From Pristiophorus japonicus (lineage: Eukaryota), in assembly GCF_044704955.1 (NCBI RefSeq), contig NC_091999.1, positions 26,288,001 to 26,352,000 on the forward strand: a stretch of DNA of 64,000 bases. Direction: 5' to 3'. The position numbers and the translations under genes were made by a program. How positions within the stretch are numbered: position 1 is the stretch's first letter; each line of letters begins with the position of its first letter. Under the pieces are notes generated by a model that was not told where the DNA came from, ran no database searches, and saw nothing but the letters and a program-made list of their open reading frames with translations. Positions 4,951-63,114 of the stretch are shown one piece after another.

Positions 4951-4989
4951 AAGGGCTGCTGAGAAGATTAGTAAACTGACTACAACACG

Positions 4990-5960
4990 GAGTTAATGGG
5001 GACATTCAAGTGGTTGTGTAAAAATACATTTTGGGTGCAAAAGCAAATTGTGAGGAAGACACTAAAATATTCTCCAAGGAGATATAGACAGGCTAAGTGA
5101 GTGGACAAAACTTTGACAGATGAATTATAATGGTGAAAATCTCAGATTATCCACTTTGGCAGAAAAGAAATAAAGCAAGTTATAATTTAAATGGAGAAAA
5201 ATTGCAAAGTGCTGCGGTACAGAGGGACCTGGTTGTACTTGTGCATGAAACACAAAATGTTACTATGCAGGTACAGCAAGTAATCAGGAAGGCAAATGGA
5301 ATGTTGCCATTTATTGCAAAGGGGATGGAGTACAAAAGCAGAGAAGTCCTGCTACAACTCTACAGGGTATTGGTGAGGCCACACCTGGAGTACTGCATAA
5401 AGTTTTGTTCTCCGGATTTAAGAAAGGTTATACTTGCATTGGCGACTTTTCAGAGAAGGTTCATTGGGTTGATTCCGGAGAAGAGGGGGTTGATGTATGA
5501 AGAAAAGTTGAGTAGTTTGGGCCTATACATGTTGGAGTTCAGAAGAATGTGAGATGATCTTATCGAAACATATAAGATAATGAGGGGGCTCGAGAAAGTG
5601 GATGCAGAGAGGACATTTTCATTCACAGGGGAAACTAAAACTAGGAGGCTTAATCTCAGAATAAGAGCCTGCTATTTAAAACTGATATGAGGAGGAATTT
5701 CTTCTCTCAGAGGGTTGTAAATCTGTGGAAGTCTCTGAAACAGAGAGCTGTGGAGGCTGGGTCATTGAATATATGTAAGGCAGAGATGGGCAGATTTTTG
5801 AGCGATAAGGGAATAAAGGGTTAGGGGGAGCGGGCAGGGCGTTGGAGCTAAGTCCATGATCAGACCAGCCATGAACTTATTAAATGGCAGAGCAGGCTCG
5901 AGGGGCCAAATGGCCTACTCCTGCTCCTATTTCATATATTCTTATGTTCTTGTGTTCTAA
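4990..5960 (+). mobile_element. 5'-truncated CR1 LINE
   Basis: ORF 5130-5552 QRDLVVLVH...LYRVLVRPHLEYC; 3' UTR ending ttcttatgttcttgtgttct. Confidence 0.9.
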
Positions 5961-8794: not shown

Positions 8795-10024
8795 TTATTC
8801 TTCAGCGATTACACTGGCTACTGGCATCACTTTACAGCAGATATTAAAACACCCGATAATCAGACAGCAAGTAATTATTATTACAACCATAATAATTACT
8901 CCATGCATAAGATAGGACCCCCAGGATCCCCCTAACAGCCAGTCAAACCAGTCAGATCCTCCTGCTGTTATGTATAACTTCTTTACCTCCCTTCTTATGT
9001 GATCAGCGAGGTTGGTTATGTTTTCTGAATTATCAGGAATGTAAGTGCAACATTCAGCTCCAATTAAGGCACATTGTGCATATGGCTACCATTTCAGCCG
9101 TTATGGCCTCCATTGCTTCAGCAGTGCCGTTAACTATCTGTTCCAGTACCCTCTCTAGGTTATGTAATTCATCCATGGTGCGTCCTATCCCGAATGGGAG
9201 CATCATGATCCCAAATAGCCTCTCTACCGCGGTAAGATCTCGTCTTAGTCGACCTGGTGTCTGTACTTCTGCTAAAGTATGTACCCGTCTGACAAAGGTG
9301 ACCACATATCCCAAATAACAAGACCCCCTCCAGTTCTGAGGCAACCAGGTGTAGGCCTTATGCCCGCACACAAAATAAGTGCCATTGTATGCTGTTAGAT
9401 TCGATCCCAATCTCTCTCTCAGCCCCTGTCGCCACCTAATCTTAGGGTCCCAGTCCTGGCTACTTGTCTGATTTTTTAAACCCTCTATTTCGAAGAAGCC
9501 CTGGTTTGTTGTTTCGCTGGCTATTATGTTCCATCTGGTGAGGTTAAAGTATATCCTGCTACAAAACCTGTTTCCTCACTGGTGAGGTCTCTAGTGAAAC
9601 AAATATCAGCGGTGTGACTCCAACTTCTGAGGTGTTGGTCAAAACCAGGAACGGGGGTCGTACCGACCTATTATATTCCGGCTGGTACCATCTGTCAATG
9701 CATCCAAAAGGTAACCCCCCGATCTCCACGTTTCTTTATTCCCACTGTGGTTCCAAGTATCATTTACTTCCCCTGTACCATTTGTCGCATTACCCACTCT
9801 GCTACTTCTGAAATGTTAAGGGAAATTGACCTCAAATGAATGCCGCCTTTGCTATGTATGGGGATGTGCGAACATACCCAGCAACTAGAAAAGTTCTCGT
9901 TTTGTGCATAAACATAAGACATGTACAAAAAGGTATTCACAAGTAACTCTCGTTTCGGTCTAGCTAGCAGGCCGGACCAAACACGAACTATGATAATCGC
10001 ACCGATCGCAATATATAGTTTCAT
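8795..10024 (-). pseudogene. env: Gamma-type env remnant
   Basis: Signal peptide MKLYIAIGAIIIVRVWSG, SU CWVC motif, TYFVCG...W.GSCYLG, furin site RLRR, residual LIGAECCTYIPDNS, hydrophobic TM; frameshifts and deletions. Confidence 0.8.
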
Positions 10025-10313
10025 CTTATTACTCTATAATTAACAAATAGTCAAAGGCAAAATGGCCATATGGCTTGCTTGAAGAATCTCTCGCTGTCAA
10101 TCTGTAAATAGATAAACAACAACAACTAATATGTGTGCTAAACGGCTGGTTCAAAAACTTTAAGCTGGGTCCAATGCTTCCATTGTCCGTTCCCTTTAAC
10201 ATCGATGCAGGCACAAGTGTCCCTGCTGATCATAACCTCATATGGTCGTATCCATTTTTGAGGCAAACCCCGGTTTTTCCCGGGAGGACCCTGACCATAA
10301 TGCGACTTCCTGC

Positions 10314-11105
10314 CTACAGGACTTCAGGGAGCTTTGTAAGCTCTGCTTCCGAGTCTCTTTCTTCCTGATTGTCCCGAACTAATTTATGCATCCCTTTTAA
10401 TTGAGTACTTAGTTCCAAAACACACCGTTTTATTTTGTCTTTTAATGGGCCTACATCGGCCCACCCTGTTATGATGTTCTCTGGTAATTGCATCGCCCTT
10501 CCTGTCATTAGTTTATAAGGGGTTAATCCGGTTGTCCGGTTTGTCGTGGCTCTTAACTTCATCAATATAATGGGTAATACTTCTGTCCACGTTTTTCCTG
10601 ACGTTTGCAAGGCCTTTGCCAGGGCGTTCTTAAGGGTATGGTTCATGCGCTCTACCATCCCAGAACTCTGCGGGTGGTAGGGGATGTGGAATTTTTGTTT
10701 TATGCCCATCAGCTGGCATATTGTTTTTACAATTTTTCCGGTGAAGTGGGTGCCTTGGTCGGAATCTATTTGAAGAGGCACTCCCCATCGGGGAATCACC
10801 TGCGCGGTCAATATCCTTACCACTGTTGAGGCAGTGCAATCACGTGTGGGGAAAGCTTCTACCCACCGGGTAAATTGATCTATAATCACTAGGCAATATC
10901 TTTTTCCATGGGATGGGGGCAAAGGACCTGTGAAATCAATTTGTACGTGTTCCCATGGGCCCCGTGGACGGGGCTTGTGTCCCATTTTAATTTTAATGGG
11001 CCTGCCTGGATTATATTGTGCACACGTAACGCATCGATGGCAATGTTTGGTGATATCTCTCCACATCCCTTTCCACCACCAATCTCTTCCAAGACTCCCG
11101 GTCAT
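10314..11105 (-). pseudogene. pol: Retroviral integrase
   Basis: CVTC zinc-binding half, WEHVQIDFT, IDSDQGTHF, PYHPQSSGMVERMN (DDE core). Confidence 0.9.
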
Positions 11106-13026
11106 GGCCTCTCATCCTGAATGTGACAGGCCATGATGCAACTCCAATAAGGTAATCTGTATGCATTCAGGCGCCATTACCTTGTCGTTTCGTCTCCAAA
11201 CGTTATCCTTCTCTTGCGTTGCGCCCTGCTTTGTCCTCATACCTATTTCCTCCTCAGAAGTGTCCTGGTGTAGTTTCTCAATACTTATCTGTTCGTCTCG
11301 GGCCCCAGCAGCACTGACTTAATTTTAATAATTAAAATCATTATCAATGGAAAGTGTTTTTTACCTCTTCAAATTATTTTTTTTTCAATTAAACCAATAT
11401 CTTTTTCACAGCTGATATCAACTGGTATTTATCCATCGCAAACACCCCTTCTCCCCCATGCTTTCATATAATCGTGTACTACCCCGAATGCATATCTACT
11501 GTCCGTATAGATATTAACAATCATATTTTCCGATAATTCCAGTGCCCGGGTGAGGGCTACCAGTTCTGCCACTTGAACTGACGACCCCCCATTAATTCGC
11601 CCTGATTCAACCGTCTCTGGATCCTGGTTAACTACGGCCCATCCGGTACGAGGTAGTCCCTCTACGTATTTTCGTGAGCCGTCCACAAACAAGGTTTGTT
11701 CTGCGGTTTGAAGGGGGGCATCTTTTATTCTATCCTCTTCCATATCCTCACATAGCTCTTCGCAAAAGCGGGGTTCCCCTTCACCCATCATACCTTCTGT
11801 GGGGTTGTTTCCTACATCACTAATTATGGTTACCGCTTTGTTGGGTGTTCAGAGGACTGCTTCCCACTTTGCCCGTCTCATATTAGATACGGTTCTCAGT
11901 TTTCCTGTGTTTAACATTTCTACCAATTGTGTTTAGTGTGGAGAATGATGTTTCCAGTCATCACCACATGCTCGCTTAATTTTTACCGCCCAAGCTGCGC
12001 AATCTAGCGCGGCTATACATCTGGATAACCCAGTCACCACCGGGCTTTCGGTGGTAGAGTAATAGGCTATAGGTCTCCTTTTATCAGGGATAAAGTTCCG
12101 GCTGTAATTAAAGAGGCCCAGTACCTTCCTCACCCCTCTTACCGTTACTGGTCTAGGCATGTCCTTGACAGCCTTTTTCCTATCCGAGGGCGTTTCTTTC
12201 AGCCCCTTGAGAGGCAGTACCCTAGGTACAGGACCTGGGATTTCCCTACCTGGGCCTTTTTGGGGAGTTAGTGGTGCTAACTCTTTCTTTTAAGATACCC
12301 TTTTCCACTAGCCCTTTTACTATTTCTACAACCGCTGTTCTAGCTTCAGGTCTTATAGGGTATTGTGGCAAGTCCCCCTTTTCTGCCCTCCTCTTGTTCC
12401 CGTGGCAAAGACCTTTTCCTGTTTTATCTTTTTCTTTTGTAAACTGCTAAAGCTTACTGTTTGAGCCTTTTTCAAAAGTCCCTTTTACACCTTCACAGAT
12501 AGCTCACCACTCGCCCAGGGGTTTGACCTGATCCCTGAAGTATTTCTAAATTTAAAACTCTTTTTTTTATACTGAGCTAGAAGCTTTCATGTCAAGGTTT
12601 TACACAAAGGAAAATGGGAGCGTTTTGAACGGCATTCTTTATCTCATTCTTAGACTCAATTTATGTCTTTCAACCCAATTGCATGTTTTCTTTCGACAAG
12701 TAAGTGAGCGTGTCAAACTTTTTTTTTCTTTACTACCGGGACCATGTATTGTTATCTTTTACTCAACAAACCTATCCTTTGTGCATTTCCTAGCTCCGTA
12801 ACTTATATCCACACCTTCGTTTCCAACTTAAAATGTAATACCATAAGGTTCACAGATTCTTAAACTTCCCACATACAGGACAACACTACGAAGGGTTAAA
12901 AACAAACATTTCACTCTGTTTGGAAAGAGTGGGTGGAGCTAAAACAGGCAGCCAACTCCATACCTTCTTAAAACAAGCTTTCATTCATTCCAAAGTCAAA
13001 ATTACTCGAGTACTCTCTTCATTCAA

Positions 13027-19540: not shown

Positions 19541-20900
19541 AGTCGAGTGTAATATTACATAGACAGGGTCTAGTGCAGTATAAAGAGAGCCAAGGTATAA
19601 CGTAATATAAGCAGGGACAGAGCCTAGTTTAATGTAAACAGCAGCAGGGTCTAGTGTAATATAAACAAGGACAGGGCCGTGTGTAATATAAACAGAGACA
19701 GGGTCGAGTGCAATATAAACAGGGCCAGGGTCTAGTGTAATTTAAACAAAGACAGGGTCTAGTGTAATATGAAAATAGACAAGGTCTAGTATAACATAAA
19801 GAGAGACAGGCCTAACATAACGTAAACAGGGACAGAGCCTAGTGTAAAATAAACTGAGACAGGGTCCATTGTATTATAAACCGAGACAGGATCGAGTGTA
19901 ATGTAAACCGAGACACGGTCTACTGTAATATAAACAGCAACAGGGCCTAGTGTAATATAAACAGAGACAGGGTCTAGTGGAATATAAACAGAGGCAGTGT
20001 CTAGTGCAATATAAACAGATACATTGCCTAGTGTAATATAAACAGGGACATGGCCTAGTGTAATATAAAAAGTGACAGGATCTAGTGAAATATAAACAGA
20101 GAGAGGGTTTAGTGTAATATAAATGGAGACGTGGTCTAGTGTAATATAAACAGAGACAGGACCAATCTACCAATCTACTTCATCCACCCAGCTCGTTACA
20201 TCCTTACTTAAAGAAATCCATCAAATTTGTCAAACATGATTTCCCTTTCATAAAACCATGCAGACTCTGCCTGATTGAATTATGCTTTTGTAATTGTCCC
20301 GTTACTGATCCTTAGACTCCAGCATTTTCCCAACGACAGATTTTAGACAAACTCGTCTATAGTTTACTGCTTTTTGTCTACGTCCTTTTTTAGATGGGGA
20401 CAGGATCTAGTGCAATATAAACAGTGTCAGCGTCTGGTATGATATAAACAGTGACAACGTCCAGTGTAATTTAAACAGCAAGAGGGTCGAGTGCAATATA
20501 AACAGAGACAGGGTCTGTGTAATATAAATATAGGCAGGGCCTAGTGTAATATAAATAAAGACAAGTCTAGTCTAATATATAAACAGAGACAGGGTCTAGT
20601 GTAATATAAACAGAGACATGGGCGAGAGTAATATATAAAAAAAGGCAGGATCTAGTGCAGGAATAACTAAGACAGGGCCCTACTTTATATAGACAGAGAT
20701 ACAGTTGAATGTAATGTAAAGAGAAACATGGTTTAGCAGAATGATAACTGAGTCAGGGCCTAGAGGCCATTAAACAAAGACAGGGTATAATTTAATATAA
20801 GCAGAGACAGATTCGAGTGTAATATGAACAGGAACATGGTCGAGTGTACTGTAAACAGAGACAGGGCCTAGTGTAACATAAACAGAGACAGGGTGTAGTG
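19540..20900 (+). repeat. 27-bp minisatellite array interrupted by a CR1 fragment (~20170-20395, minus)
   Basis: Tandem units; the insert encodes the NYRRVCL...QSLHGFMKGKSCLTNL-like RT segment. Confidence 0.9.
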
Positions 20901-22350: not shown

Positions 22351-22424
22351 GGTCTAGAGTAATTTAAACATATAGAATGTCAAGAGTAATTTGATAGCAA
22401 CATTCCAGCCATGCAAATCTTCAT

Positions 22425-22535
22425 GTCTGTCTGACTGTCTATCTGTCTGTCTGTCTGTCTGTCGTTCGGTTGGTCGGTCCATCCGTCTGTCCGTCCGTCC
22501 GTCGATTCTTACTTCTATCCATCTATCTGTACTTC
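22425..22535 (+). repeat. (TCTG)n/(TCCG)n/(TCTA)n compound microsatellite
   Basis: Directly visible. Confidence 0.85.
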
Positions 22536-22539
22536 TATC

Positions 22540-23480
22540 CAATATTACACTGGACCCCGTCTCTTTTTATATTACACGAGACTCTGTCCCTCTTTATATT
22601 ACACTTATTACCCGAGACCCTGTCTCTGTTTATATTACACAAGACCCTGTCTCTGTTTATATTACACTAGACTCTGTCTCTGTTTATATTACACTAGACC
22701 CTGTCCCTGTTTATATTACACTAGACCCTGTCCCAGTTTATATTACACTAGACCCTGTCTCTGTTTATATTACTCTAGAGCCAGTCTCCGTTTATATTAC
22801 CCGAGTCCCTGTCTCTCTTTATATTACACAAGACCCTGTCTCTGTTTATATTGTACTAGACCCAGTCTCTTTTTATATTACACTAGACCCTGTCCCTGTT
22901 TATATTACACTAGACCCTGTCTCTCTTTATATTACACGAAACCGTGACTCTGTTTATATTGCACGAGACCCTGTCTCTGTTTACATTACACTGCACCGTG
23001 TCTCTGTTTATATTAAATTATAACCTATCTCTGTTTATATTACACTAGACCCTGTCTCTGTTTACATTACTCGACCCTGTCTCTGTGTATATTAAACTAG
23101 ACCCTGTCTCTGTTTATATTACATTAGATCCTGTCTTTGTTTATATTAAACTAGACCCTGTCTCTTATTATATTACAGTAGACCCTGTCTCTGTTTATAT
23201 TCTTCCAGACACTATCCCTGTTTATATTACACTAGACCCTGTCTCTGTTTATATTAAACTGGACCCTGTCTCTGTTTATATTACACGAGACCCTGTCTCT
23301 CTTTATATTCTTCCAGACACTATCCCTGTTTATATTACACTCGACCCTGTCTCTGTTTACATTACAGTAGATTCTGTCTCAGTTTATATTACACGAGACC
23401 ATGTCTCTTTTTATATTACGCCAGGCACTGTCTCTGTTTATATTATCCTCGACACTGTCTCTCATTTTATTACACCAGAT
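22540..23480 (-). repeat. 27-bp minisatellite array (inverted orientation)
   Basis: (ccctgtctctgtttatattacactaga)n, about 35 units. Confidence 0.95.
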
Positions 23481-24269
23481 CATCTTTCCTTTTCAAATAT
23501 ATATTGATTTCCCTATTTGAAAGTTATGATTGAATCTGCTGCCATAACCCTTTCAAGCACGACATTCCAGTTATTACAACTCGCTGCATAAAACATCTCC
23601 TTATCTCCCGTCTTTTATTTATTTTATCAACCATCTCAATATTTGTCCTCTGGTTACCGATAGACCTGCCGATGGAAACCCTACCTTAATATCAACTCTA
23701 TGAAACCCCTTCACAATTTTAATTCCCCCCGAAGCATTCCCTGCTATAATAAGAATAATCCCATCCTCTCTCGTCTCCACATAACTGAACTCCCTCTGCC
23801 TTGTAGCAATCTCCTCTGCATCTTCGGCAAGAGCCCGACAATCTTCCGAAAATGTGGATTGAAATAAATGCAATCTTTATTTGCCCTTCAGATTATTTCT
23901 AAGGATACATGCTCCCTTCAAATTTGACTGAATGAGAAGCATTAATTATATTGTTTTACTTGTTTTGACAATGCAGACGGTGACTGAAATGCTCAGCAAC
24001 ATCCGTCTCCACATGACTGATGTATCAATATGATCACTGTCGCCACCTGCTGATAAACGATATTTACTGCAAGCCCCAGAGCTTATTTAAACATGATTCA
24101 TAATTCCAACCACAACAACTTGCTTGAACCTTTACCCAGAGGATTTTTTTTAGAGCAGATGATCAGGAAGTATCAAGGGCGGAATATCAAAATTATTGTT
24201 GCAAATTCACCTTCAGCCCATCACACAGAGCCGTCAGATTAGATAAACTTCCATAATGAAATAAAAACC

Positions 24270-25689: not shown

Positions 25690-25990
25690 NNNNNNNNNNN
25701 NNNNNNNNNNNNNNNNNNNNNNNNNNNNNNNNNNNNNNNNNNNNNNNNNNNNNNNNNNNNNNNNNNNNNNNNNNNNNNNNNNNNNNNNNNNNNNNNNNNN
25801 NNNNNNNNNNNNNNNNNNNNNNNNNNNNNNNNNNNNNNNNNNNNNNNNNNNNNNNNNNNNNNNNNNNNNNNNNNNNNNNNNNNNNNNNNNNNNNNNNNNN
25901 NNNNNNNNNNNNNNNNNNNNNNNNNNNNNNNNNNNNNNNNNNNNNNNNNNNNNNNNNNNNNNNNNNNNNNNNNNNNNNNNNNNNNNNNNN
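25690..25990. other. Assembly gap (N run)
   Basis: 301 N bases. Confidence 1.
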
Positions 25991-26058: not shown

Positions 26059-27599
26059 ACAGGGTTATGTGCGGTACTGATACTCCAGCTGACTGCTGCT
26101 ATTGACATGGTTTCTGAGACATTGGATATACTTCCTTTCCTGAGATATGGGAACAGTTACACACATTTACACAACGCAAAAAATTAAACTTAACTCCAGT
26201 ACTGTTACTGGGTACATGTGTTTATAAATAGGTCTTTTTACCATGTGAAGGTTTTGAAGTTGGCTTCCAGGCATGCGGTCAGTAGTGAGAAAACTGACCT
26301 TTGATGGACTGGACAGAACCCCACATGCTTCCTGTAAATTACACTGATGTTCGAGGCTCGCTGACGTCAGTCGGTTAGGTTACTGCCAAATATTGTGTGG
26401 GTCAGATTAGCGTGAACAAGAATGGGAGAAAGATGGTATTTAACTATTTGAACATTAAATTATTCAGTCGAACTTTTAAAATAAGAAGCATTTTACTTGG
26501 TATAACATCTCAAGAATGATTTTCCATAAATTCTTAGCTCGCCATATTATAAGATAAGATCGGAAAATAATGAATTGATCCACACGGTATCTAAGGAAAA
26601 CTATTTCCAAATAAAGACCATTCTAGACCATTCAGTCACTTTATTCAGTACAGCATGAAGTGCTGGAGAGAGGTTTAATGGCCTCATCCCACACTGTAAT
26701 AAGATGAGTGAGATTCGCAACGTAACTAAAACAGGTTCAATTGCCTTGAATATTCTCACAGAGAAGTGCCAGCTGCACTTCTTTAATATTCTCACAGAAT
26801 TTTGCGCCTGGTCTAAACTAATGTCTCCATTATTCCAGATTAGTAGCCGCGCAGTGTGCGGTGTAATTTGCGCTGATTTGGATCCCTGAACAAACCCTCT
26901 CATAGCCCGGCTACCATTGGGTGGTGAAATGCCCAGATTGTGATCTGTTTCTGCTGGAGATGAAGCATTTACTCCTGTGATATTCTGTAACATACCGCTA
27001 TGTCCTGATACACCGAGTTCCTGTTACCCGTGTCTGTTACACAGTCGGTCGCTATTAAAGTTAGCTACAAGGATTTGAATGTCGAGGTTTGCTGATCATA
27101 TTATCGGTTCTGATTCACAAGATTCTCTCATAAAACGCAGGTCTGAAGCGGGCGGGACCCATTTTCTTATGTGTCTCCGTCAACTCACTCCTTTATCATC
27201 AGTCAATCGGACTTATTTTACAGCTAATTTTACAAACGGCTGTCTTAGGGTCACAGACTCAGGGGCAGTTAGTGAAATGCAATGAGAGACAATTGCATAA
27301 TGTGAGGAGTATGATCTCATCTCCAGACCAAAAGTGTGTAGCTTTAGCCACGTACACCGTAAAAAGAATCACATTACCCATCTCCCGCATTTGGTTACAT
27401 AGAGTGATAACAATTCAGATTATAAGCGATACTTTATTGGTACAGATGCATGGATAGATAGTGGGAGATGGAGAAACACAAAATGGCAGTGTCTTTAGAC
27501 CCTGATAATGTAATTCAATCTCAGAGATTCACACCCCCTTGAAACAGTGAGAAAATAAAGGGATTTAACTTACAGTCCAGATGTGAGTCCGTTCTGTTC

Positions 27600-27787
27600 A
27601 TGATGCGGAAGGTGTGATGTGGATCCAGAAACCGCCCCTATCTGGGAATCAATGGGCGGCGCCTGTGACCTCGCCCCCATCTCCCGGCTATTTAACTGCC
27701 GGTCATTGCGACCGCAATACAACAGTCTGGAAGTGGGTTTGCTCAGTGAGTTCTTGCCGGAACCATTCATCACACATTGCCAGGAGG
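27600..27787 (+). promoter_or_regulatory. VH promoter region
   Basis: TATA-like TATTTAA at 27689-27695, ~95 bp upstream of the leader ATG; GC boxes and an ETS-like GCGGAAG at ~27605; no ATGCAAAT octamer. Confidence 0.6.
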
Positions 27788-27833
27788 ATGAGGTTGGCGA
27801 TTTCTCTCAGTGTGTTGCTGGTTTTCTTTTCCC
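27788..27833 (+). CDS. IGHV: Ig heavy-chain leader exon (MRLAISLSVLLVFFS-R)
   Basis: ATG, hydrophobic signal peptide, phase-1 donor GTGAGT at 27834; 126-bp intron to ttttcacAG at 27959. Confidence 0.95.
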
Positions 27834-27959
27834 GTGAGTAGTTTTTATTGTCCAATCTCTCACTGTTACTGTCTCAGTGTTAGTTTCTCTCTGGAATGTT
27901 ACAGAGTCAGGAATCATTTCACCAGGATTGATCGTAGGGGTTTTTGATTATTTTCACAG

Positions 27960-28264
27960 GTGTCCAGTCGGATGTGGTGTTGACTCAGCCCGAGGCAGAG
28001 ACCAGGATTCCCGGGGTCTCCCTGAGACTGACCTGTAAAACCAGCGGCTTCGATCTTGGTGGCAGCTACATGTACTGGATCCGCCAGATTCCCGGACAGG
28101 GGCTGGAGTGGCTGCTTCAGTATTACAGTCCATCGAACAAGTATTATGCCGCAGGGATTGCGAGCCGATTTACTGCGTCCAAAGACACTTCAAACAACAT
28201 CTTCGCGCTGGACATGAAGAACCTGAAGAGCGAAGACACCGCCATCTATTACTGTGCAAGGTAC
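27960..28264 (+). CDS. IGHV: Ig heavy-chain V segment (shark IgM-type VH), germline unrearranged
   Basis: VQS|[10 protein letters not shown]...[13 protein letters not shown]...[12 protein letters not shown]...[33 protein letters not shown]; both Cys and the Trp are conserved; open frame. Confidence 0.98.
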
Positions 28265-28303
28265 CACAGCGAGAGGAACCAGGGCTGGACCCGTACAAGA
28301 ACA
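28265..28303 (+). other. V 3' RSS, 23-bp spacer
   Basis: CACAGCG (28265-28271), 23 bp, ACAAGAACA (28295-28303). Confidence 0.92.
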
Positions 28304-28710
28304 GATCGAGAGGGAATTCAACAATTTTCATCATAACCTGACGGTCAGTAAGTGTGACAAATGCAATGTTAACAACAGTGTTCAGAACAAGACCATAAAC
28401 CGCTTCTTACAAAACTAAGACACTGAGAATTCAATGGTGAAAATCTAACACACTAACCCATGTACTGAGGGGTAGTTTTGGTTGTGCTCCTGTTTAATGT
28501 GAGCAGTGTCAGCAATTGCAGAGCTGGAGATGATGCTCGATTCACTGTGCCTGGTACATGCAGGGAGCTGGTTGGAAGTGTGTTCACTTTCTATTGTGTT
28601 GTGTAAACTGTTGGCTAAATTCTAAACTTGATCAGAAGCGAATGTGTATTTGAAGTGAATGTCTATTTGAAGTGTACGTTGAGAGTTAGTACTGAGCAGA
28701 GAGTGAGGGC

Positions 28711-28738
28711 AGTATTTGTGCGGGTTCCTGTCACTGTG
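28711..28738 (+). other. D 5' RSS, 12-bp spacer
   Basis: AGTATTTGT (28711-28719), 12 bp, CACTGTG (28732-28738). Confidence 0.9.
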
Positions 28739-28755
28739 GGACTACAGCAGTGGGC
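28739..28755 (+). CDS. IGHD: DH segment (D1-type), GGACTACAGCAGTGGGC
   Basis: 17 nt between a 12-RSS and a 22-RSS; all three frames open (GLQQW / DYSSG / TTAVG). Confidence 0.93.
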
Positions 28756-28793
28756 CACGGTGGTATACAGAGCGAGCTTACCATACAAAAACC
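28756..28793 (+). other. D 3' RSS, 22-bp spacer
   Basis: CACGGTG (28756-28762), 22 bp, consensus ACAAAAACC (28785-28793). Confidence 0.93.
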
Positions 28794-29108
28794 CCAGACA
28801 TGGAATTTGCACAAACATGCGATCGCTACCACGCCAGGAGCGTCGAAGGAACTGAGGTTTAAGTAAAAATAATAAGTGGAAGTAAGATATATATATATTT
28901 AAATGTATCACATTTTTCTGCTTTATTACTCTTGATTGACATGCTGAATCTGCACAGCTGCTTCAGAAGTATTCCAATCATTTTTTATAAATATAATGAA
29001 CGGTACAAACTGAAATATCTCACTGATTCACTCTTAGGGGAGTCAGAATCAGGCTTTCAAAGCTGCGTGCAAATTAATCTCTGTATTTTACAGTTAACAG
29101 TCCGCCGG

Positions 29109-29136
29109 AGTATTTGACACAACGTGTCTCACTGTG
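29109..29136 (+). other. RSS 5' of JH, 12-bp spacer
   Basis: AGTATTTGA (29109-29117), 12 bp, CACTGTG (29130-29136); no nonamer-like sequence at 22 or 23 bp spacing (agtccgccg / cagtccgcc). Confidence 0.85.
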
Positions 29137-29184
29137 ACGCTATGGACTACTGGGGACAAGGGACCATGGTGACGGTGACTGCAG
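29137..29184 (+). CDS. IGHJ: JH segment (AMDYWGQGTMVTVTA)
   Basis: WGQG motif, 48 nt, phase-1 donor GTAAGG at 29185. Confidence 0.97.
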
Positions 29185-29294
29185 GTAAGGAACATTCACT
29201 CATTCAGTAACTCTTGTATTTGTGTCTTTATTTTATATTTTTGTTTATTTTAATAATTATTTCGTTCACTGAAACTTGGGTTCGGTGGATTTTG

Positions 29295-30490
29295 TTTTGA
29301 GATTTTTTGCAATGCTCAATGTGATTCTGCTGCAAAATGATTATAGAATTCAACAGTTTCTCCACAGAAAATGTTGTTGATGTGATTTGGTGTTTATTCG
29401 CTGACGACTGTGTGCCTGGGTTACTTTAAATACTTTATGGTTGTTACACTGTTTGACGTTTCTGCAATGTTTAATCTCGGTGACCTCTGATTGTTGCAGT
29501 TCTTCTGATCGAATGCAAACATTGTGTTTAAATCTATTTAAAGGAACATTGTAGGCACAAAACAGAAAGCTTAGCGATCAGTAAATAATCTTAAGGAATT
29601 TAATGTTTTTTAATTAAAATTACATTCTCATCAACTGAGCGAATGATCCCGAACTCTCAGATTAAATACGTGAAGTGTTACTGTAATTAAGAACTGAAAA
29701 ATTAATATTTCCAGCCGGAAGATTTAAATTAATATTACTAACATTATTATAATGTAGTAATATCACCAATTATTATTAAATATGCTATAATATGAACATT
29801 AATTTATTCAGCATGATCTGTCAAATCACAATTCTGCTGTCAGTATTTTACATTTCTGTTGAATTCAATCATTAGTTATTTCATTGTTAGGCGGGTTTGG
29901 TGATTGTGTAATGAGATTTTTTGCAAGGATACATTTGATTCTGCTGAAAGAGTTTATAGAATGAAGGGTCTGCTCCATGAAAGATTCTGTCGAGGGATTC
30001 CGCCCCTCAGTGATGTGATTTAGTGTTGATCTGCTGAGGAGAGTTTGTGCCTGTGTTACTCAGAATACCGAGAATTTGTGAAGCAGTTTCGCGTTTCTAC
30101 AATGTTTAATATCGGTGTCAGCGAGCAGCAGCAGGTTTACGCTCGAATGCAATAATGATATATGTTTGAAACTGTTTGGAAACAGATTGTAGGCAGAGAA
30201 CAGGAAGGTGTTAGAAATCATAAATCATTGAAATGTATTTTAACATAACAATTATTGAAGTGATAATTATATATTCAACTATTAATCTATGTTTACGATG
30301 CTGATATTTTATTGTGTGAAATGTAACTAATTACCATATACATAATTAATAAGTGTTTAGGTTGTAGTGGAATTAAATTAATATTAACCAACCGATTATA
30401 ATGCGATACCTCCCAGTGTTATTAAAATATGCTATAAGTTCAATTCTCATTTACTTAATATTATTCGCCTTCCAAAATCCTGCTGTACAC
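29295..30490 (+). repeat. Old ~600-bp tandem duplication at the 5' end of the J-C intron
   Basis: Shared blocks tgagattttttgcaa, tgatgtgattt, caatgtttaat, cgaatgcaa, attgtaggca and aaatatgctataa recur in the same order with ~610-660 bp offset. Confidence 0.8.
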
Positions 30491-36336: not shown

Positions 36337-36636
36337 TAACATCGTCTCCCCCTACCCTCTACGCCCTGCTCTCCTCCTGTGAACAACCAAGCACCGATGG
36401 CTCCATCACATACGGTTGTTTGGCGATGGACTACTCCCCCGATATCACCAGCCTTTCCTGGAAGAAAGATAAAGTGCCGATCACCACTGGATTGAAGACC
36501 TACCCGCCAGTGCTCAACAAGAAGGGAACCTACACCCAGAGCAGCCAGTTAACCATCACCGAGTCAGATGTGGGGAGCAGCACAATCTATTGCGAGGTTC
36601 GACGTGGTGTGTCGGTCTGGGCCATCACAATGCCAG
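36337..36636 (+). CDS. IGHM: IgM constant exon Cmu1
   Basis: Acceptor tttttcccAG; [17 protein letters not shown]...GCLAMDYSP...W...YCEVRRG; donor GTTAGT; 300 nt, phase 1/1. Confidence 0.97.
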
Positions 36637-37433: not shown

Positions 37434-37751
37434 ATCCTGAACGGGACATCGTTCCTCCAACTGTTCTCCTCACGCTGAGTTCCACTGAACAAATCACCAG
37501 CAGCAGATATGCAAGCGCTGTGTGTTCAATCATCGATTTCCGGCCAAAGTCACTGACCGTGAATTGGCTGAAAAGTGGACAACTCCTGGATTCGGGCTTC
37601 ATCACCTCTCCCGTCTTTAAGGTGAACGGGAACTTCTCGACGGCCAGTCGGCTGACGGTCCCCGCCGAGGAATGGTTCACAAGCTCGGTCTACACCTGCC
37701 AGGTCACTCATCAAGGGGTCATGCAAAGCCGTAACTTCAGCAGATCTCAGG
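37434..37751 (+). CDS. IGHM: IgM constant exon Cmu2
   Basis: [13 protein letters not shown]...[18 protein letters not shown]...YTCQVTHQ...SRSQ; acceptor ttttgaAG, donor GTAAGA; 318 nt. Confidence 0.96.
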
Positions 37752-39705: not shown

Positions 39706-40014
39706 TGGATGTCCCATGCAGCGATTCAAAAATCACTCTTCGCCCACCGTCACTGGAACAGGTCTTACTGGAGGCGACGGTGACCTTAACCTGCATCGTG
39801 TCTGACGCTCCTTATGGACTCACCGTGTCCTGGACCCGAGAAAAGGAGGCTTTGAAATCAGAGATTGTTGTCCAACCTGGAGAGGATCCCAACAGTGTGA
39901 TCAGCAACTTAAACATCTCGACACAAGACTGGCTGAGTGGGGATAAGTTCTATTGCGTGGTGAGCCATCAGGATATGCCGACTCCTATCAGAGATTCCAT
40001 TCACAAGGAAAAGG
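39706..40014 (+). CDS. IGHM: IgM constant exon Cmu3
   Basis: [33 protein letters not shown]...W...[13 protein letters not shown]...KEK; acceptor tttcgcAG, donor GTGAGC; 309 nt. Confidence 0.96.
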
Positions 40015-40935: not shown

Positions 40936-41327
40936 CGAAAGCTCCACGGGAACCAGCCGTATCTGTCCTCCTGCCCTCGGCAGAAGAAGTCTCCGCTCAG
41001 AGGTTGGTCAGCCTCACCTGCTTAGTGAGAGGTTTCTCCCCCCGAGAGATCTTCGTCAAATGGACCGTCAATGACAAGCCGGTGGATTCGGGCAACTACA
41101 AGAACACCGAGGTGATGGCGGAGAACGGCAGCAGATCCTTCTTCATGTACAGCCTGCTATCCATTGCAGCCGAGGAGTGGTCCAGCGGCGCTTCTTACTC
41201 CTGTGTGGTGGGACATGAAGCGATCCCCTTGAAGATCACCAACAGAACCGTCAATAAATCCAGCGGTAAACCCAGTTTCGTCAACATTTCCCTTGTTCTG
41301 ATGGACACCGTCAATTCTTGTCAATGA
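40936..41327 (+). CDS. IGHM: IgM constant exon Cmu4 plus secretory tailpiece
   Basis: [14 protein letters not shown]...[17 protein letters not shown]...[11 protein letters not shown]...NKSS|[20 protein letters not shown]; tailpiece NIS glycosylation site and penultimate Cys; internal donor G/GTAAAC at 41266 for the membrane form. Confidence 0.98.
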
Positions 41328-42129: not shown

Positions 42130-43420
42130 ACAATTACACACAAACACACATAGACTTACATATAAAGACATACATTAACACTCTGGCACATAATATTATA
42201 CATAACTAGAATATCATGAAAACCATCATTGTCAAATCCAGTTATTGGTACTCTCTAAAACTTTGAACAATAGCAATAATACACGGCAATCTAAACGCAC
42301 ACTTACACAACGGATACTTACACACACTTACACACACATAGACACACACTTCAATCCACACACATACTTACGCAAAACACACCTACACACATAAACACAT
42401 ACATCAATCCACACACAAACTTACGCAAAACACACTTACACACACATAGACACACGCATCAATCCATACACACACACTTGCAAAACAAACTTACACACAC
42501 TTTTACACACATAAACACATACATCAATCCACACACACATTTACACAAAACACATTTACACACACATAAATACACATCAATCAACACACACACTTACACA
42601 AAACACACAAACAGACTTACACATACATAAATACACACATCAATCCACACACACACGTACACAAAACACACACACACTCGTAAACAAACGCATCAATCCA
42701 AACACACATTTACACAAAACACACAATCGCTTACATGCAAATACACAATTGCACTTAGACACACACATTAATCAAAACACACACTGACACAAAACACACA
42801 CACACAAACACATAAACTTACCTGCAAACCCATTGTTACACATAAACACACACACGCTTACACCTAAACATGAACAACACTGCGACATAGCCATACACTT
42901 ACAGGGAAACACACACCTGAACACATTTACACAAGCATGAACACGCATATAAATCCAAACACAAACTAACACAAAACACACACACACAAACTTACAGGTA
43001 AACACAATGTTACACGAAAACTCACACACACACATTTACACCTCAACATAAACAAACGCTTAGACATAACCTTACACATACACTTACAGGGAAACATACA
43101 CATAAACATACATATACACAAGGATACACATACACTTACACATAAGCACACACATGAACACATTTGCACACGCACACACACACACATACACACACACACA
43201 CAAACCCTTAGATATGAACATGTTTACACATAAAAGTACACACACTCACCTACACCAAATCGCACACTCACAATTAAATATAAACACACACACTTACATA
43301 TAAACACAAGCGTTCTTAAACAAAACATAAACAAATATTTCCACACACATACACAATCTTACAACTATACATACGCACAACCCCACAGATCAACACCCTC
43401 ACAGGGAAACACAAACACCG
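42130..43420 (+). repeat. CA-rich low-complexity tract (~1.3 kb)
   Basis: Imperfect (CA)n with recurring catcaatccacaca / cttacaca units. Confidence 0.92.
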
Positions 43421-44108: not shown

Positions 44109-44236
44109 ATTCCTCAGACCACATCTGGAATGAAGACTATGAGTACGAGAGCGGCAACATCTGGACAACAGCTTCCACATTCATCATCCTGTTCTTCCTG
44201 AGCATTTCCTACAGCGCTGCCGTCACTCTGGTGAAG
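44109..44236 (+). CDS. IGHM: IgM transmembrane exon TM1
   Basis: DSSDHIWNEDYEYESGNIWTTASTFIILFFLSISYSAAVTLVK with the CART motif; acceptor ccccgtAG, donor GTGGGA; in phase with the Cmu4 internal donor. Confidence 0.95.
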
Positions 44237-45170: not shown

Positions 45171-45707
45171 TATTCGGTTCTCAATGTATTGCTCAGTTAT
45201 ATTCACTTTGTGTTCACTTTTTTACACTTCCCTGTAAATTGTTTTCTGTGAAATTGTTAATAAATCTGGAATGACAAATTGAAGTAACTTGGATTTTCTC
45301 CATGGCTCCTGTACACCGCTTCATTTTTCCTGTCACACTGTGTTTTATTTGCCTGACAGGTATGTTTCACCCGTTCTGTCTGGGATGTGATTGAACCCAA
45401 GTCCCATTGGTGAATGACCCACGGCGCCACCCAATGTCCCATCGGAGTAAAGACACCTCGACCACTGCCTTGTTGTATCGGTCCCAGAGGCGGAATTACG
45501 GCACAACGACCAGGTGCACCATGCAGTCTCCTCTAATATTATGGTCTGTCACAGTCACATGGCAGGTTCTATTAAAAAACAGGACTCCATTCCGTCACAG
45601 ATTGTCACACTTCAGTACACGGCAGAGTACTTTCACTCTCCCAGGGCAGGTACAGCACGGGTTAGAAACCTGACACAAACGCCCAAATTATCACAACCCC
45701 GGAGAAT

Positions 45708-46235
45708 GGCCCCCAATAGGGTGAGCCTGTGCTGGCGCAAAAGGGTGAGCCTGTGCTGGCCCAATAGGATGAGCCGGGCTGGCCCAATAGGGAGAGCCCA
45801 TGCTGATCCAATATGGTGAGCCCGAGCTGGCCGAATCGGGTGAGCCCGGGCTGGTCCAATAGGGTGAGCACATGCTGGCCCAATAGGGTGAACCCATGCT
45901 GGCCCAATAGGGTGAGCCGGGTTGGTCCAATAGGGCGAGCCCGGGCTGGCTCAATATGGCGAGCCCAGGCTTGCTCAATCGGGTGAGCCCAGGCTGGCCC
46001 AATAGGATGAGTCTGTGCTGGCCCTATAGGATGAGCCCATGCTGGCCCCATAGGTTGAGGCCATGCTGGCCCAATAGTGTGAACCCGCGCTGGCCCAATA
46101 GGGTGAGACGGGTCTGTCCAATAGTGTGAGCCCGGGCTGGCCCAATAGGGTGAGCCGGGCTGGCCCAATAGGATGAGCCGGGCTGGACACATAGGCCGAG
46201 CTTGGGCTGGCCCAATAGGATGAGCCGGGCTGGCA
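45708..46235 (+). repeat. ~24-bp minisatellite carrying a CCAAT box in most units (ggcccaatagggtgagcccgggct)
   Basis: About 22 tandem units. Confidence 0.92.
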
Positions 46236-46299
46236 CAGGGTCACCAGACAACAGTCAGCACAACAAGGCTCCCTGTCAGGGCCCACTGACCTGGTCACA

Positions 46300-46700
46300 A
46301 ACATGTGTCCAATCAAACTGACTGAAGCCCCGCCCATCCATTATCGCTGCCCAAAGGGCCGCGCATGCGCCGCGAGATCCGCTCTGACCAAGATGGCGGC
46401 CACTGAGCCCGCTGCCCAAACCTGACCAAGATGACGGCCGCTGAGCCCGCTGCCCCGGACGCTCACTGACTGGGCCTGGAACCGGGCTGTGATTCGGTTA
46501 TTGGGGACGAGCCCGGGTGTATGTGAAGCGGATGGTGCCGAGTGTTGTCTCTCGGGCCTGGGCCCGCGCTTGGGCTGCGTGTCCCGCCCGGGGTTTATTA
46601 ACGCAGGGAACTATTGGTTCTGCACTTTGTGACTGACCGGAGACAAGCCCCGCCCCATCTGGGCCCGAATCATTCTGTGCATGTGGGGCAGAGAAATAAA
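46300..46700 (+). promoter_or_regulatory. CpG-island promoter (CCAAT, GC box, NRF1, YY1)
   Basis: ccccgccc 46328-46335, GCGCATGCGC 46361-46370, CAAGATGGCGGC 46389-46400; CpG-dense. Confidence 0.7.
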
Positions 46701-47447
46701 ACTTGGGTAAGGCACTTCGGATGGGGGAGGCATGCACTGGGACTGGGGTAAGGCACTTCGGCTTGGGGAGGCGTACACTGGGACAGGGGTAAGGCACTTT
46801 GGCTGGGGGAGGCGTACACTGGGACTGGGGTAAGGCACTTTAGCTGGGGTGGGGGCATGCACTGAGACTGAGGTAAGGCATTTCGGCTGGGAGATGCATG
46901 CACTGGGACTGCGGTAAGGCACTTTGGCTGGGTGATGCATATACTGGGACTGGTGTAAGGCACTCCGGCTGGGGGAGGCCTGCACTGGGAATGACGTAAG
47001 TCACTTCGGCTGGTGGAGGCGTGCACTGGGACTGGGGTAAGGCACTTCGGCTGGGGGAGGCATGCACCGGGACTGGGGTAAGGCACTTCGTTTGGAGGAA
47101 ACTTCCACTGCGACTGGAGTAAGGCACGTTGGCTGGGGGAAGCATGCACTGCGACTAGGGTAAGGCACTTTGATTGGGGGAGGCATATATTGGGGTAAGG
47201 CTCTTCGCCTGTGGGAGGCATATACTGGGACTGGGGTAAGGCATTTTGTTTGGGTGAGGCATATATTCGGGTAAGGCTCTTCGCCTGGGGAGGCATATAC
47301 TGGGACTGGGGTAAGGCACTTTGGCTGGGGGAGGAATGCACTGGGACTGGATAAGGCACTTTGGCTTGGGGAGGCATATACTAGTACTGGAGTAAGGCAC
47401 TTCGACTGGGGAAGGATGCACTGGGACTGGGGCAAGACACTTTGGCT
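46700..47447 (+). repeat. 41-bp minisatellite (ggggtaaggcacttcggctgggggaggcatgcactgggact)
   Basis: About 18 tandem units; GT positions at 46707, 46748, 46789 and onward. Confidence 0.92.
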
Positions 47448-47619
47448 GGCAGTCGCTGTCTTCTGGGAGCTCTGCCTCTGTTGTTTCAGGAAGTCAAAGT
47501 GGATCAAGTTACAATTTGCAAAGTAAATGAGACGTTGGGATGGGCGGTTTCAGTTACACATTCGAGTGACACCTCAGGCTGTGGCTTATCTTCCAAAGGA
47601 ACCAATCATGGAAAAAGGT

Positions 47620-48423: not shown

Positions 48424-51400
48424 ATGTTTAAGAGAAAAGACAAGGAGCAGTCTCCTCCTGCGGGAGAGAAGTATAGAATACCAGGGTGGAGCACGTGTGA
48501 TGAGGGTTTTGGCTCTCTTGCCAATGTGCTAGCCCAGTTTGCACCCCCGCAACATTGGGATATGCAGTTATTGGAACAGAGCAAAGATAGAACCGTAGCC
48601 CACAGGAGAAAAGTAGTCCCTCACAAATGGAATGGATTTTGTTGACAGCATTAAGGACGATGTGTAAACAACTTAAGGAAAGTGAGGCAGAAAACCTAGA
48701 GTTAAAAACAGCTGTTAAAGTTTTTGAAAGTCAAAACTCGACTCTCACTGAAGCGGTCCGCACTGCACAATAACGGGTGGACAAGCTCAATGAACAATCA
48801 GAAACTTTAATATGCCATCTGGTGAAAGTAAAAAATTATTAAAAAGCCAGACGATGGAAATTGCAGATAGATCGGTCAAAGGTACGTGCATTGGTAGCTG
48901 GACCCACTTGGGATCCGGCTCATTGGGAAGGAGACATCTGGTACTCCTCTTACTCAGAATATGAGTGGACAGATGGAGAGGGGGGGGACGGGAGGAAACT
49001 AAAAATCCTCCCCCATACGCTCCGAGCACGAAAGCTAGACCCCTTATGACAAATAAGGCGAAACAGCAAGATGGGGAACAGCTGGTAACCACTAGAGGGG
49101 TGCGTGACTTGACCACTAGTGAGTTACAAGAAATAGGGTCTCGATTTCGCAAAAAACCCGAGGAACCATTGTCAGAATGGCTAACCCGGATTTGGGATCA
49201 GGGAGCATCAGGCGTAATATTTAACCCTGAAGAGTTAACAAAACTGAGGACTATGATTACGGACCACTATATCACAGCAGTGCTACGGAATGTCCAGGGA
49301 ACAAGTCGCTATGGGACATGGTTATTATAGGGGTCCAGCAAAAATATCCCTCTCCGTTGATTTGGAAGTGGAGGTAAAACCTTGGAGTACTGTAGGAGAG
49401 GGTGCAATACAATTGCGCAACATGGCAACACAGGGAGGAATATATCACCAACAATATGGGGGGCCAGACCAGGAGCTCTTTACGGCAGGAATGCTGAGCA
49501 GGCTGATGAAGAGTGGCCCTCCTATGATGAGGGGTGCACTACTCGCATTATTGGGACCAGCCCAAGGGCAGCGGGTAGGGGACGCTTTCCTGTTGTTAGG
49601 ACAGTTAGAGGATGTAGAAGATAGTGTGGGAGAGTCGAGAACGGCTAATGTAGAGGGGGATCAGGACCAGCGACAAGGTTCGACCTCTGGGAAAGATATA
49701 GGGTCAGGAAAGAAAAAAAAATAATTTTGCGGAGGGACATGTTCACGGCTTTACTGAAAGCAGGGGTCCCCAAGGAAAAAATTGATGGAATCCCAACAGG
49801 AGCAATGTATTCTATGTGGAAGCAACGCTGCGTCCCGGGAACAGGGAAGGGAAAAAGGAGGGAGGTAAGGGAGACTAAGTCGGATAGCGACAAGTCTGCG
49901 GATGCGGAGAAACCACCTCCCACTAGCCTATACCCCAGCGTAGAAGAGCTGTGGAAGGCTAGTAATCCCCTCGAATGGGGTGTGGCCAGGATCCGGGAGT
50001 ACTCCCCGTTAGAACCACATCAACCCAAGTTCCCGGGGATCTGAGGCCACACATTCCGATTACGATACAGTGGCGGAGCAGGGGCGAACATACAAAGAGA
50101 TGTTGCTTTACTAGACACAGGGGCAGAAGTTACTATTATCCATGGAAACCCTAGGAAACACACAGGGACCCGTGTGATGATTAATGGGTTCGGAGGGGCA
50201 GAAACGCCCGCTGTCCGAACAACTATCAAAATGGCGTTGGGAAATGGGCCTCCGCGCTGGGTAACGGTCTTAATATCGGCAGTAAAGGAACATATTATTG
50301 GGATGGACCTTTTAAAGGGAATCACACACAACAACTCGTTTGGGCGATTCTCATTCGGGATATGGGCGATCACTGAGATTGCAGGGAAGCAAAGTAGGAA
50401 CCAGTGGTAATACCATGGCCATCGCGTATAGTGACTATGAAACAGTACCGCATACCTGGGGGACACAAAGAAATAGGGGAAACCATACAAGGGCTCTTGG
50501 AGGCAGGAATCATTAGACATGTGGTGTCCCCCTACAATAGCCCTGTTTGGCGTGTGCAGAAATCCGACAAAAGTTGGAGGATGACTGCGGATTACCGACA
50601 ACTGAACAAATGTGCCCCTCTCCTGGCAACTGCTGTCCCAGATGTAGTAACTATAACAGAGCGGCTGTCTCAAGAAGGTGCGGAGTGGTATGCGGTAACC
50701 GACCTGGCCAATGCCTTCTTCTCCATTCCAATAGCGAAAGAATCCCAGGACCAGTTTGCATTCACTTGGGAAGGGAGACAATACACGTTTAAAGGCCTAC
50801 CTCAAGGTTACCGACATAGCGCTACCCTATGCCAAGGATTGGTGGCCCGGGACCTGGACATGTGCACGTTGGCTCCTAATGCCTCACTGGCACACTACAT
50901 CGATGATGTACTAATAAGGGATCCCACCGAGGCTGTGGTGTCAGAAGCCCTAGCTACTTTAGTCCAACACATGAGAGACAGGGGCTGGGAGATAAATCCG
51001 AAGAAGATGCAGGGCCCGAGCCAGATTGTCCAGTTTCTGGGGATCCAATGGTCTCGGGGTGAGCGCGTCATACCCGAGCCTGTGAAGAATAACATTCAAG
51101 AAATGGCCACCTCCACGAATAAAACTGAGACACAACGGTTCGTGGGACTATTGAGTTACTGGAGGAGACACAACCCTCACCTCACGATGCTTTTAAAACC
51201 GTTGTATGCCGTAACACGAAAAAAGGCCCACTTCGAGTGGGGAAAGGAACAACATGCAGCCAAAGAAGCCGTAGCTCAAGCTTTACCCCTAGCCCCACGA
51301 GTGCCTGGACAGCCTTTTGAGCTCCAGGTATCCGTTACCAATGATACTGCAGTATGAAGTTTGTGGCAGGTTCAACATGGCACTCGTATATCGTTAGGGT

Positions 51401-53093
51401 TATGGTCTAGAACATTGACAGATGCTGCTGCTCGTTACACTCCATTTGAGAAACAATTATTAGCATGTTATTGGGCCCTTACAGAATCAGAAGGACAGAC
51501 AGGGGACGCCAAAGTCAGTTTAAGACCAGACCTACACATATTATCCTGGGTTCTGTCAGAAAATGAGACACATAAGGTCGGGCGAGTGCAGCAAAGCTCC
51601 ATAGTGCGCTCGAAATGGTATATCGCAGACAGAGCAAGTAAAGGGAAAGAAGGAATCACCCGGCTACATGAGCATGTGGCTGAATACCCACAAACAGTTG
51701 AGAGTGAACTTACGCAGTCGTCTGTCAGTTTAACCAAAGAGTCACCGATCACCTGGGGCGTGTCTTTTGAACAGTTAACACCCGAAGAACGTAGCCATGC
51801 CTGGTTCACAGGTGGCTCAGCGGTCTGGCGAAATGGCTTTCGGCGATGGCGAGCCGCTGCCTTCAATACAAAAACCCAGACAATTGTGCATGATGAGGGC
51901 GTGGGAGGCTCCAGCCAGCAAGCAGAACTAGCAGCTGTAGTCCTTGCGTTAGAAGAGGAACAGCAACAAGTAAACATATATACTGACGCATGGGCAGTAG
52001 CCAATGGTATGGCGGGCTGAATGCGAAACTGGCATGAACATAACTGGCAAATAACTGGGAAAGACTTGTGGGGAAAATACCTATGGGAACAAATATGGTC
52101 CAAAGCCCAGAAGATGAAAATAACTGTATATCATGTGGACACTCACATGAAAAATACTTCAAAGACCTCTGAATATAATAACACCGTTGATAATATAGCC
52201 CGGGTACGGGCTGTCAAAGAGGCGGAAGAGGAAGAATATGGCATAGGCAAGTGGGTCCACCACAAATCTAGATATTTGGACATTCAGGGTACGATACAGT
52301 GGGCACGAAATAGGGGGTTACATTTGACGACGGACGGTGTTAATCAGATCATAAACACCTGTGAAATTTGTCAAAAGGTGAAGCATTTTCCCCAACAACG
52401 ACAACACGGTGCCATATTAAGAGAGGGACTCAACCAGCAGAAACATGGCAAGTTGATGATGTAGGACCTTTACCATTGCAACAACGGTTCCAATATTTGC
52501 TCATTGTTGTTGATACCTATTCTATACTTTTGTTCGCTTATCCAGTGACTAAAGCGAATCAACCAAGTACAATTAAAGGACTGGAGAATTTAATCACATA
52601 CTACAGTGAGCCGGCAGAAGTACAGTCCGATAATGGGTCGCACTTCACAGGTCAAACAGTGCAACGGTGGGCGGTAGACAACGAGATCTATTGGATGTTT
52701 CACAAACCTTACTATCCGCAAGCTGCAGGTTTAATGGAACGCAGGAATGGATTACTTAAACAACAGATTAAAATATTAACTCCCACTAACACATTGCAAG
52801 GGTGGTTAAAGATCTTACCACAAGCAGTGCGCAATCTGAATCACCGACCATTGTTGGGGGGAACTCCCATAAGCCACATGTTAGGCAAAGTTAGTGTCCC
52901 TACTATTGAAAAAGAAAATCAGACTCAGGACACAGTTTGTGAAGGAGGAAAAGTGTGGGTGCAGTACCCCCAGAAACGCTTACAAGCAGGGGAAATCTTA
53001 GTGAAAGGAGAACGAAACACTTATTGTGTGCTCCTGACGGGTCAAGATTTTCCTCTCTCTGTTGACAAGGGTAAATTGACTAAACGGGGCTGA
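48424..53093 (+). pseudogene. gag-pro-pol of class III ERV (disrupted)
   Basis: ORF fragments 48424-50044 (gag), ~50100-50410 (pro), 50404-52464 (RT/RNase H with in-frame TGA stops), 52368-53093 (IN). Confidence 0.9.
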
Positions 53094-57555: not shown

Positions 57556-57558
57556 CCA

Positions 57559-62324: not shown

Positions 62325-63114
<790 letters not shown>

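Follow-up and report, generated by a model that had tools for sequence, protein, structure and literature searches.

A one-D IgM heavy-chain cluster of shark type with a 12-bp recombination signal on JH

Described immunoglobulin clusters and the anatomy of the one-D locus

Antigen-receptor loci vary in which segment bears the 12-bp and which the 23-bp recombination signal sequence (RSS). The grammar V-23 / 12-D-23 / 12-J, with a 12-RSS on J, is that of TCR beta, TCR delta and IgNAR. In the canonical elasmobranch IgM minilocus, VH-D1-D2-JH-Cmu, as described for nurse shark groups 1-5 (PMC2435157), a single leader and VH with a 3' 23-RSS are followed by a D1 with a 5' 12-RSS and a 3' 22-RSS, a D2 between two 12-RSSs and a JH with a 23-RSS. 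The segments lie a few hundred bp apart, and an intron of ~7 kb leads from J to four Cmu exons, a secretory tail and TM exons. Shark and skate clusters that are already joined in the germline have been described as VD-J, VD-DJ and VDJ forms (PMC5192425, PMC4279169), and V-D-DJ intermediates are found somatically in nurse-shark lymphocytes (PMC2435157).

In this study, we analysed a window of 64 kb of DNA, the whole stretch presented above, which contains one Ig cluster; its V-to-J part occupies 28265-29184. Direct reading and an RSS scan gave the order V-23RSS, 12RSS-D-22RSS, 12RSS-J (Table 1). The cluster resembles the canonical minilocus in its leader and VH with a 23-RSS, its D1-type segment with 12/22 signals, the spacing of its segments, the length of its J-Cmu1 intron and its Cmu, secretory-tail and TM exons. 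It differs from that minilocus in having no D2 between two 12-RSSs and a 12-RSS rather than a 23-RSS on J, so that two joins replace three and a direct V-to-J join is 12/23-legal. Like the germline-joined clusters, it has lost an intersegmental region together with the facing RSS pair, at RSS borders: D2's 3' RSS, the D2-J spacer and J's 23-RSS are all absent, and a D2-bearing relative exists (see below). Its J side also resembles the DJ half of a VD-DJ cluster, in which a 12-RSS precedes the J-bearing block. Unlike in those clusters, V and D are free, and in place of a coding joint with letters of both segments there is an untrimmed J and no letter of D2, which amounts to a swap of signals and not to a fusion of coding segments. 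The configuration is also that of a somatic V-D-DJ intermediate after the D2-J step, but joints made somatically retain letters of D2, gain N/P letters and have a trimmed J, whereas the joint in the window is clean and recurs in diverged paralogues. The spacer grammar is like that of TCR beta, TCR delta and IgNAR, although the spacer 3' of the D measures 22 bp and a single D stands against the three of IgNAR. The likeness implies no homology: V, J and C are of IgM type, with no TCR or NAR homology found, and it is shark IgM that V and C match. In the literature searched, which excluded the original horn-shark paper, we found no account of an open one-D IgM cluster whose J bears a 12-RSS; by that literature, the cluster would be a further variety of germline-rearranged shark Ig cluster.

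Table 1. Features of the IgM cluster, in coordinates of the window
Feature	Position	Strand	Basis and remarks
Leader exon	27788..27833	+	ATG to donor GTGAGT; in phase with V exon (..FFS R VQS)
VH exon, open, ending TGTGCAAGGTAC	27960..28264	+	Pfam V-set E=1.8e-14; 64-75% identity to shark IgM VH proteins
V 23-RSS: CACAGCG, 23 bp, ACAAGAACA	28265..28303	+	direct reading and scan
D 5' 12-RSS: AGTATTTGT, 12 bp, CACTGTG	28711..28738	+	direct reading, scan, pattern count
Single D, D1 type, 17 nt	28739..28755	+	no stop in 3 frames: GLQQW / DYSSG / TTAVG
D 3' 22-RSS: CACGGTG, 22 bp, ACAAAAACC	28756..28793	+	direct reading and scan
D-J spacer, homologous to D1-D2 intersegmental DNA	28794..29108	+	D2-bearing contig matches to 29136; homology presumed to extend over the spacer
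12-RSS of J, very probably D2's 5' RSS by origin: AGTATTTGA, 12 bp, CACTGTG	29109..29136	+	reading, nonamer scoring, contig ends at 29136 and 29130
JH, 48 nt, full length, encoding AMDYWGQGTMVTVTA	29137..29184	+	donor GTAAGG next; 14 nt 5' of Trp codon
Cmu1 exon	36337..36636	+	C1-set E=2e-11; in phase with J
Cmu2 exon	37434..37751	+	C1-set E=3e-16
Cmu3 exon	39706..40014	+	C1-set E=1.8e-9
Cmu4 exon, secretory tail and stop	40936..41327	+	C1-set E=8e-23; 65-89% identity to shark/chimaera IgM
TM1 exon (..NIWTTASTFIILFFLSISYSAAVTLVK)	44109..44236	+	open frame, splice borders

The original prediction had placed a single D between V and J and, in front of J, a nonamer-12 bp-CACTGTG signal whose nonamer agrees with that of the D at 8/9 and which has no counterpart at 22/23 spacing. 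Both points were borne out to the base. When nonamers were scored before the J heptamer at spacers of 8-30 bp, the score peaked solely at a spacer of 12, with 6/9 to the consensus and 8/9 to the D's nonamer; at 21-24 bp it reached at most 2/9 to the consensus, and JH has no 23-RSS. The pattern AGTATTTG, 13 free bases and CACTGTG occurs twice in the 64 kb, precisely at the 12-RSSs of D and J, against a mean of 0.01 in shuffled sequence (two matches in 0/100 shuffles). Between 28794 and 29108, the RSS scan found no second RSS-flanked D, no relic RSS or nonamer, no signal joint and no head-to-head heptamers. The ACTACAG..GTGGG core of the single D is common to nurse-shark D1.

The J segment, collinear with human JH4, starts ACGC and has 14 nt before its Trp codon. 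Germline JHs of the nurse shark likewise have 14 nt before that codon and start ACTA or ACGA (ACTATTTTGATTAC, ACGAATTCGCTAAC) (PMC2435157). Since the 5' length is the same, J has lost nothing at its 5' end and contains neither D2 nor N letters, and its 48 nt match the nurse-shark germline JH length, in agreement with the predicted full-length J that starts AC without D2 or N residue.

The remaining parts of the cluster are intact, as had also been predicted. The leader, V, J, Cmu1-4, secretory tail and TM1 are all open and in phase with AG/GT borders, and frames, splice sites and Pfam domains agree; TM2 was not located. V and Cmu4 are 64-89% identical to proteins of several sharks and a chimaera, and V and C are of IgM type. 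Judged from its reading frames and domains, the cluster is complete and apparently a working IgM heavy-chain minilocus of shark type. A TATTTAA box lies at ~27690, upstream of the leader, and no canonical octamer (ATGCAAAT or ATTTGCAT) occurs within ~300 bp upstream of the leader (27500-27787). The V end ...GCAAGGTAC (28250-28264) and the J start ACGC (29137-29153), joined directly via their shared AC, would read CARYAMDYW in frame.

Breakpoints and paralogues in public shotgun contigs

Public sequencing runs provided independent views of the junction. Sampled words of the stretch were found at 39-44% in four runs from one sample of organism A and at 5-7% in runs of two related organisms. The V exon had no match when metagenomes were scanned with it, and in the public run search no RNA run contained the stretch. 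Contigs were mapped to the stretch at 85% likeness, at which many paralogous IgM clusters fall on it. The contigs sum to genome length and their depth is similar across exons and spacers, which suggests that the runs are shotgun DNA. From long paralogue-specific contigs, single-copy depth was taken as ~20 in run X1, ~10 in X2 and 2-6 in X4. A reading of the V(D)J-like joints in these contigs as somatic or as RNA was dropped, because contig totals equal the genome, exons and spacers have even depth and depths scale with coverage; the joints are those of germline-joined paralogues.

Contigs that end their match at the junction locate the breakpoints on both sides. On the left, two organism A contigs, one in X1 with 130 further letters and one in X2 with 55, follow the window as far as 29136, where the heptamer ends, and past this point they read GTACAGTGGGTGG and then CACAGCA, that is, a D-sized segment and a heptamer. 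The segment ends TGGGTGG, as does nurse-shark group 5 D2. On the right, the match of other contigs begins no earlier than 29130, the heptamer's first base, and continues through J into its intron; ahead of it stand 10 unlike letters in organism A and 21 in organism B. These contigs suggest that canonical JHs of the species begin at the base where J begins in the window. Because a contig goes on into a D2-like segment after 29136, a relative of the cluster, either a paralogue or an allele, has D2 where the window has J. The breakpoints at 29136 and 29130 bracket the heptamer, and D2's 5' signal is thus fused exactly to J. This is what the original prediction had proposed for JH, together with an alignment in which the 5' side should lead into D1-D2 DNA and the 3' side into J; on public contigs of the same organism that alignment came out positive, the 5' side continuing into the D2-like segment and the 3' side being J. 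We consider it very likely that the fusion of D2's 5' signal to J lies in inherited DNA.

The copy in the window and the family to which it belongs are represented differently in the runs. Each run has 30-40 contigs at least 99% identical to the stretch; the positions given here are those of the longest contigs in each run. No independent read showed the junction of this exact copy, the best run having 44% of the words and the contigs listed over the D-J spacer being 91-96.5% identical; we infer that this copy, too, is in its germline state. The same junction is found in a sister subfamily. A contig of 261-266 nt over 28914-29173/29176, ~91% identical to the window, has the same RSS-to-J junction plus an extra TG (CACTGTG TG ACGC), at a depth of 182/126/41 in X1/X2/X4, which is ~10x single copy and scales with run coverage. 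A diverged contig with the same junction at ~10x depth indicates that the D2-less junction is inherited, is old enough for ~9% divergence and has been multiplied. The layout is not unique to this cluster: a multi-copy family of paralogues has it as well. A further contig has V and D joined (28261 to 28739, with AA between) at depths of 173/139/33, and its variant letters continue through the D 3' RSS. It belongs to the same depth class as the ~91% RSS/J contig and precedes it, and one D2-less subfamily is thus also VD-joined. The additional TG in the sister subfamily corresponds neither to a P-nucleotide of J nor to the start of D2; N addition and (TG)n slippage are both possible sources, which leaves the ancestral junction uncertain and the mechanism undecided by this TG.

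Several other germline-joined paralogues appear among the shotgun contigs over 27700-29500 (X1, X2, X4, X9). In addition to the VD form with AA between, at ~10 copies, there are D-J joined paralogues with 8-12 letters between the segments (28742/28743/28754 to 29136-29145), at one to four copies, and a VDJ-joined form in organism A; organism B has another VDJ-joined form. In organism B, the D1-type segment is 3 nt shorter at 28745, in a single contig that accounts for all the depth. The J contig of organism B has no match upstream of the heptamer, and the D2-less layout was not seen among organism B contigs.

Origin of the junction

In a hybrid joint of V(D)J recombination, one partner contributes its intact RSS and the other its coding end, and if the two RSSs have the same orientation, the intervening DNA is deleted. 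Such joints are known as rare somatic or in-vitro by-products, and none is known to us to have been reported as a gene form fixed and duplicated in the germline. They were reportedly described by Lewis et al. in 1988 and by Melek et al. in 1998. The junction in the window has their form: an intact RSS of one segment, heptamer included, abuts the full-length coding end of its 12/23 partner.

In the model that we consider most likely, RAG, acting in germ cells, cut at D2's 5' 12-RSS and at J's 23-RSS, which would have been a legal 12/23 pair in the same orientation, and the signal end was then joined to the J coding end as a deletional hybrid joint. Such an inherited deletion would have removed D2, D2's 3' 12-RSS, the D2-J spacer DNA and J's own 23-RSS, and would have left the 12-RSS formerly before D2 abutting an untrimmed JH. 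The product would then have been inherited and duplicated, with V and D joined as well in one subfamily. RAG activity in shark germ cells is documented (PMC2193156), and the other joints seen in contigs of this genome are of RAG type, with trimmed ends and added letters. We infer a role for RAG in the loss of D2, which is favoured by breakpoints at RSS borders, by a genome full of RAG-type germline joins and by the documented germline action of RAG in sharks. For the full statement, an inherited loss of D2 by a RAG hybrid joint, we hold the chances to be evenly balanced. Two other routes were considered and rejected. Inversion by standard joints between D2's 5' RSS and the J RSS should leave a head-to-head signal joint and place D2 on J in inverted orientation, neither of which is seen, and duplication of a D1 unit as the source of the J RSS is contradicted by V-D and D-J spacers without similarity beyond the RSS itself.

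A hybrid joint and a deletion from heptamer to heptamer give identical sequence and are indistinguishable here. The latter would be a RAG-independent germline event, by slippage, microhomology-mediated end joining or unequal crossing-over, between the direct CACTGTG heptamers of D2's 5' side and of J. It agrees with breakpoints that bracket exactly the shared heptamer and with a window junction at which no letters were added or lost, and the sister subfamily's extra TG lies within a run of TGTG, as slippage gives. A homology of seven bases, however, is short for an event that deletes a few hundred bp, and the many RAG-type germline joins in the genome make RAG a ready agent at exactly these sites. 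We regard this explanation as rather unlikely, though one to be taken seriously.

The original prediction had judged that a hybrid joint or a heptamer deletion fits better than an ordinary D2-J coding joint, and the full-length J and published joints support that judgement. For a germline coding joint to give a V-D-DJ cluster of this appearance, D2 would have to be fully chewed back and nothing added, with J left whole. The D2-J join is a normal step in sharks, with V-D-DJ intermediates occurring somatically (PMC2435157), VD-DJ germline clusters are described (PMC5192425), and D2 is occasionally lost entirely in somatic joints. Nevertheless, three rare outcomes are needed together. By our count, the supplements of PMC2435157 show 23 somatic D2-J joints of the nurse shark, 4 in Figure S1 and 19 in Figure S11. 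J escaped trimming in 1/23 of them, D2 and/or N/P letters are present in 23/23, and an untrimmed J without D2 or N letters is found in 0/23. In addition, a remnant of D2 next to its 5' RSS would begin GT...; no such remnant is present in the window, and the letters in the sister subfamily are TG. Since none of these published joints is like the window junction, an ordinary coding joint is unlikely, and we consider it an improbable source of this cluster.

An artefact, either a collapsed assembly or a somatic lymphocyte allele caught in it, is very improbable. The junction of the exact copy is the one missing from independent reads, at a word share of 0.44, and there is an N gap at 25690-25990. 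On the other hand, 27.7-29.5 kb is free of gaps and anomalies, a diverged, multi-copy paralogue shows this junction in contigs of three runs whose depths scale with coverage, and somatic joints would carry N letters and trimming and stay below contig depth. It is just as hard to credit that the one-D layout with a 12-RSS on J is ancestral in the lineage and that D2 and the 23-RSS of J came later, since, although TCR beta/delta and IgNAR have the same grammar and the one-D form is common in the shotgun contigs of this genome, two D segments per IgM cluster are described in sharks and skates, a 23-RSS on JH is general to jawed-vertebrate IgH, the mammalian locus included, and the same organism has a D2-bearing paralogue with a look-alike upstream flank.

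Predicted consequences for assembly, and surroundings of the cluster

Whatever agent removed D2, the arrangement of signals predicts how the cluster would be assembled. In lymphocytes, assembly would proceed in two steps and not three, from V-23 to 12-D and from D-22 to 12-J. A direct V-to-J join would also be 12/23-legal, and D-less joins could arise unless joining is restricted beyond the 12/23 rule, as it is in TCR beta. The CDR3 of a one-D cluster would contain at most one D, with two junctions and not three.

The cluster points to a simple heritable route by which one germline event shifts a signal from D to J. The shift would alter the joining rules, replacing three obligatory joins with two and allowing V-to-J. 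Should the family be expressed, shorter and less diverse CDR3s are expected from it than from two-D clusters of the same animal, and the comparison would test within one species what the second D contributes. If RAG made the junction, a by-product of V(D)J recombination would have been fixed as a gene form. The most far-reaching account, which we advance tentatively and think somewhat more likely to fail than to hold, is that a germline RAG hybrid joint gave rise to a TCR-like V-23 / 12-D-22 / 12-J form of IgM, which was kept, multiplied to at least 10 copies, gave VD-J derivatives and is expressed with one-D, perhaps D-less, CDR3s. If it is true, the family would be a natural case of the recombinase itself rewriting the grammar of recombination signals.

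Retroelement-type ORFs flank the cluster at 48965-53090 (+), 9057-12289 (-) and 54350-55783 (-), with reverse transcriptase (PF00078), integrase core (PF00665, twice) and aspartyl protease domains among them. Long tandem repeats at 4462-5005, 19789-20179 and 22376-23530, on both sides of the region upstream of the cluster, translate as VYITLDPVS-like units. Downstream of Cmu4/TM1, low-complexity blocks at 42295-43230, 45636-47549 and 56329-59549 are CA/TG-rich and GC-rich (at most 59% GC) with strong strand skews. An open frame at 62328-62852 (-), beside repeat-rich DNA, encodes at least 4 C2H2 zinc fingers (PF00096, E=6e-31).
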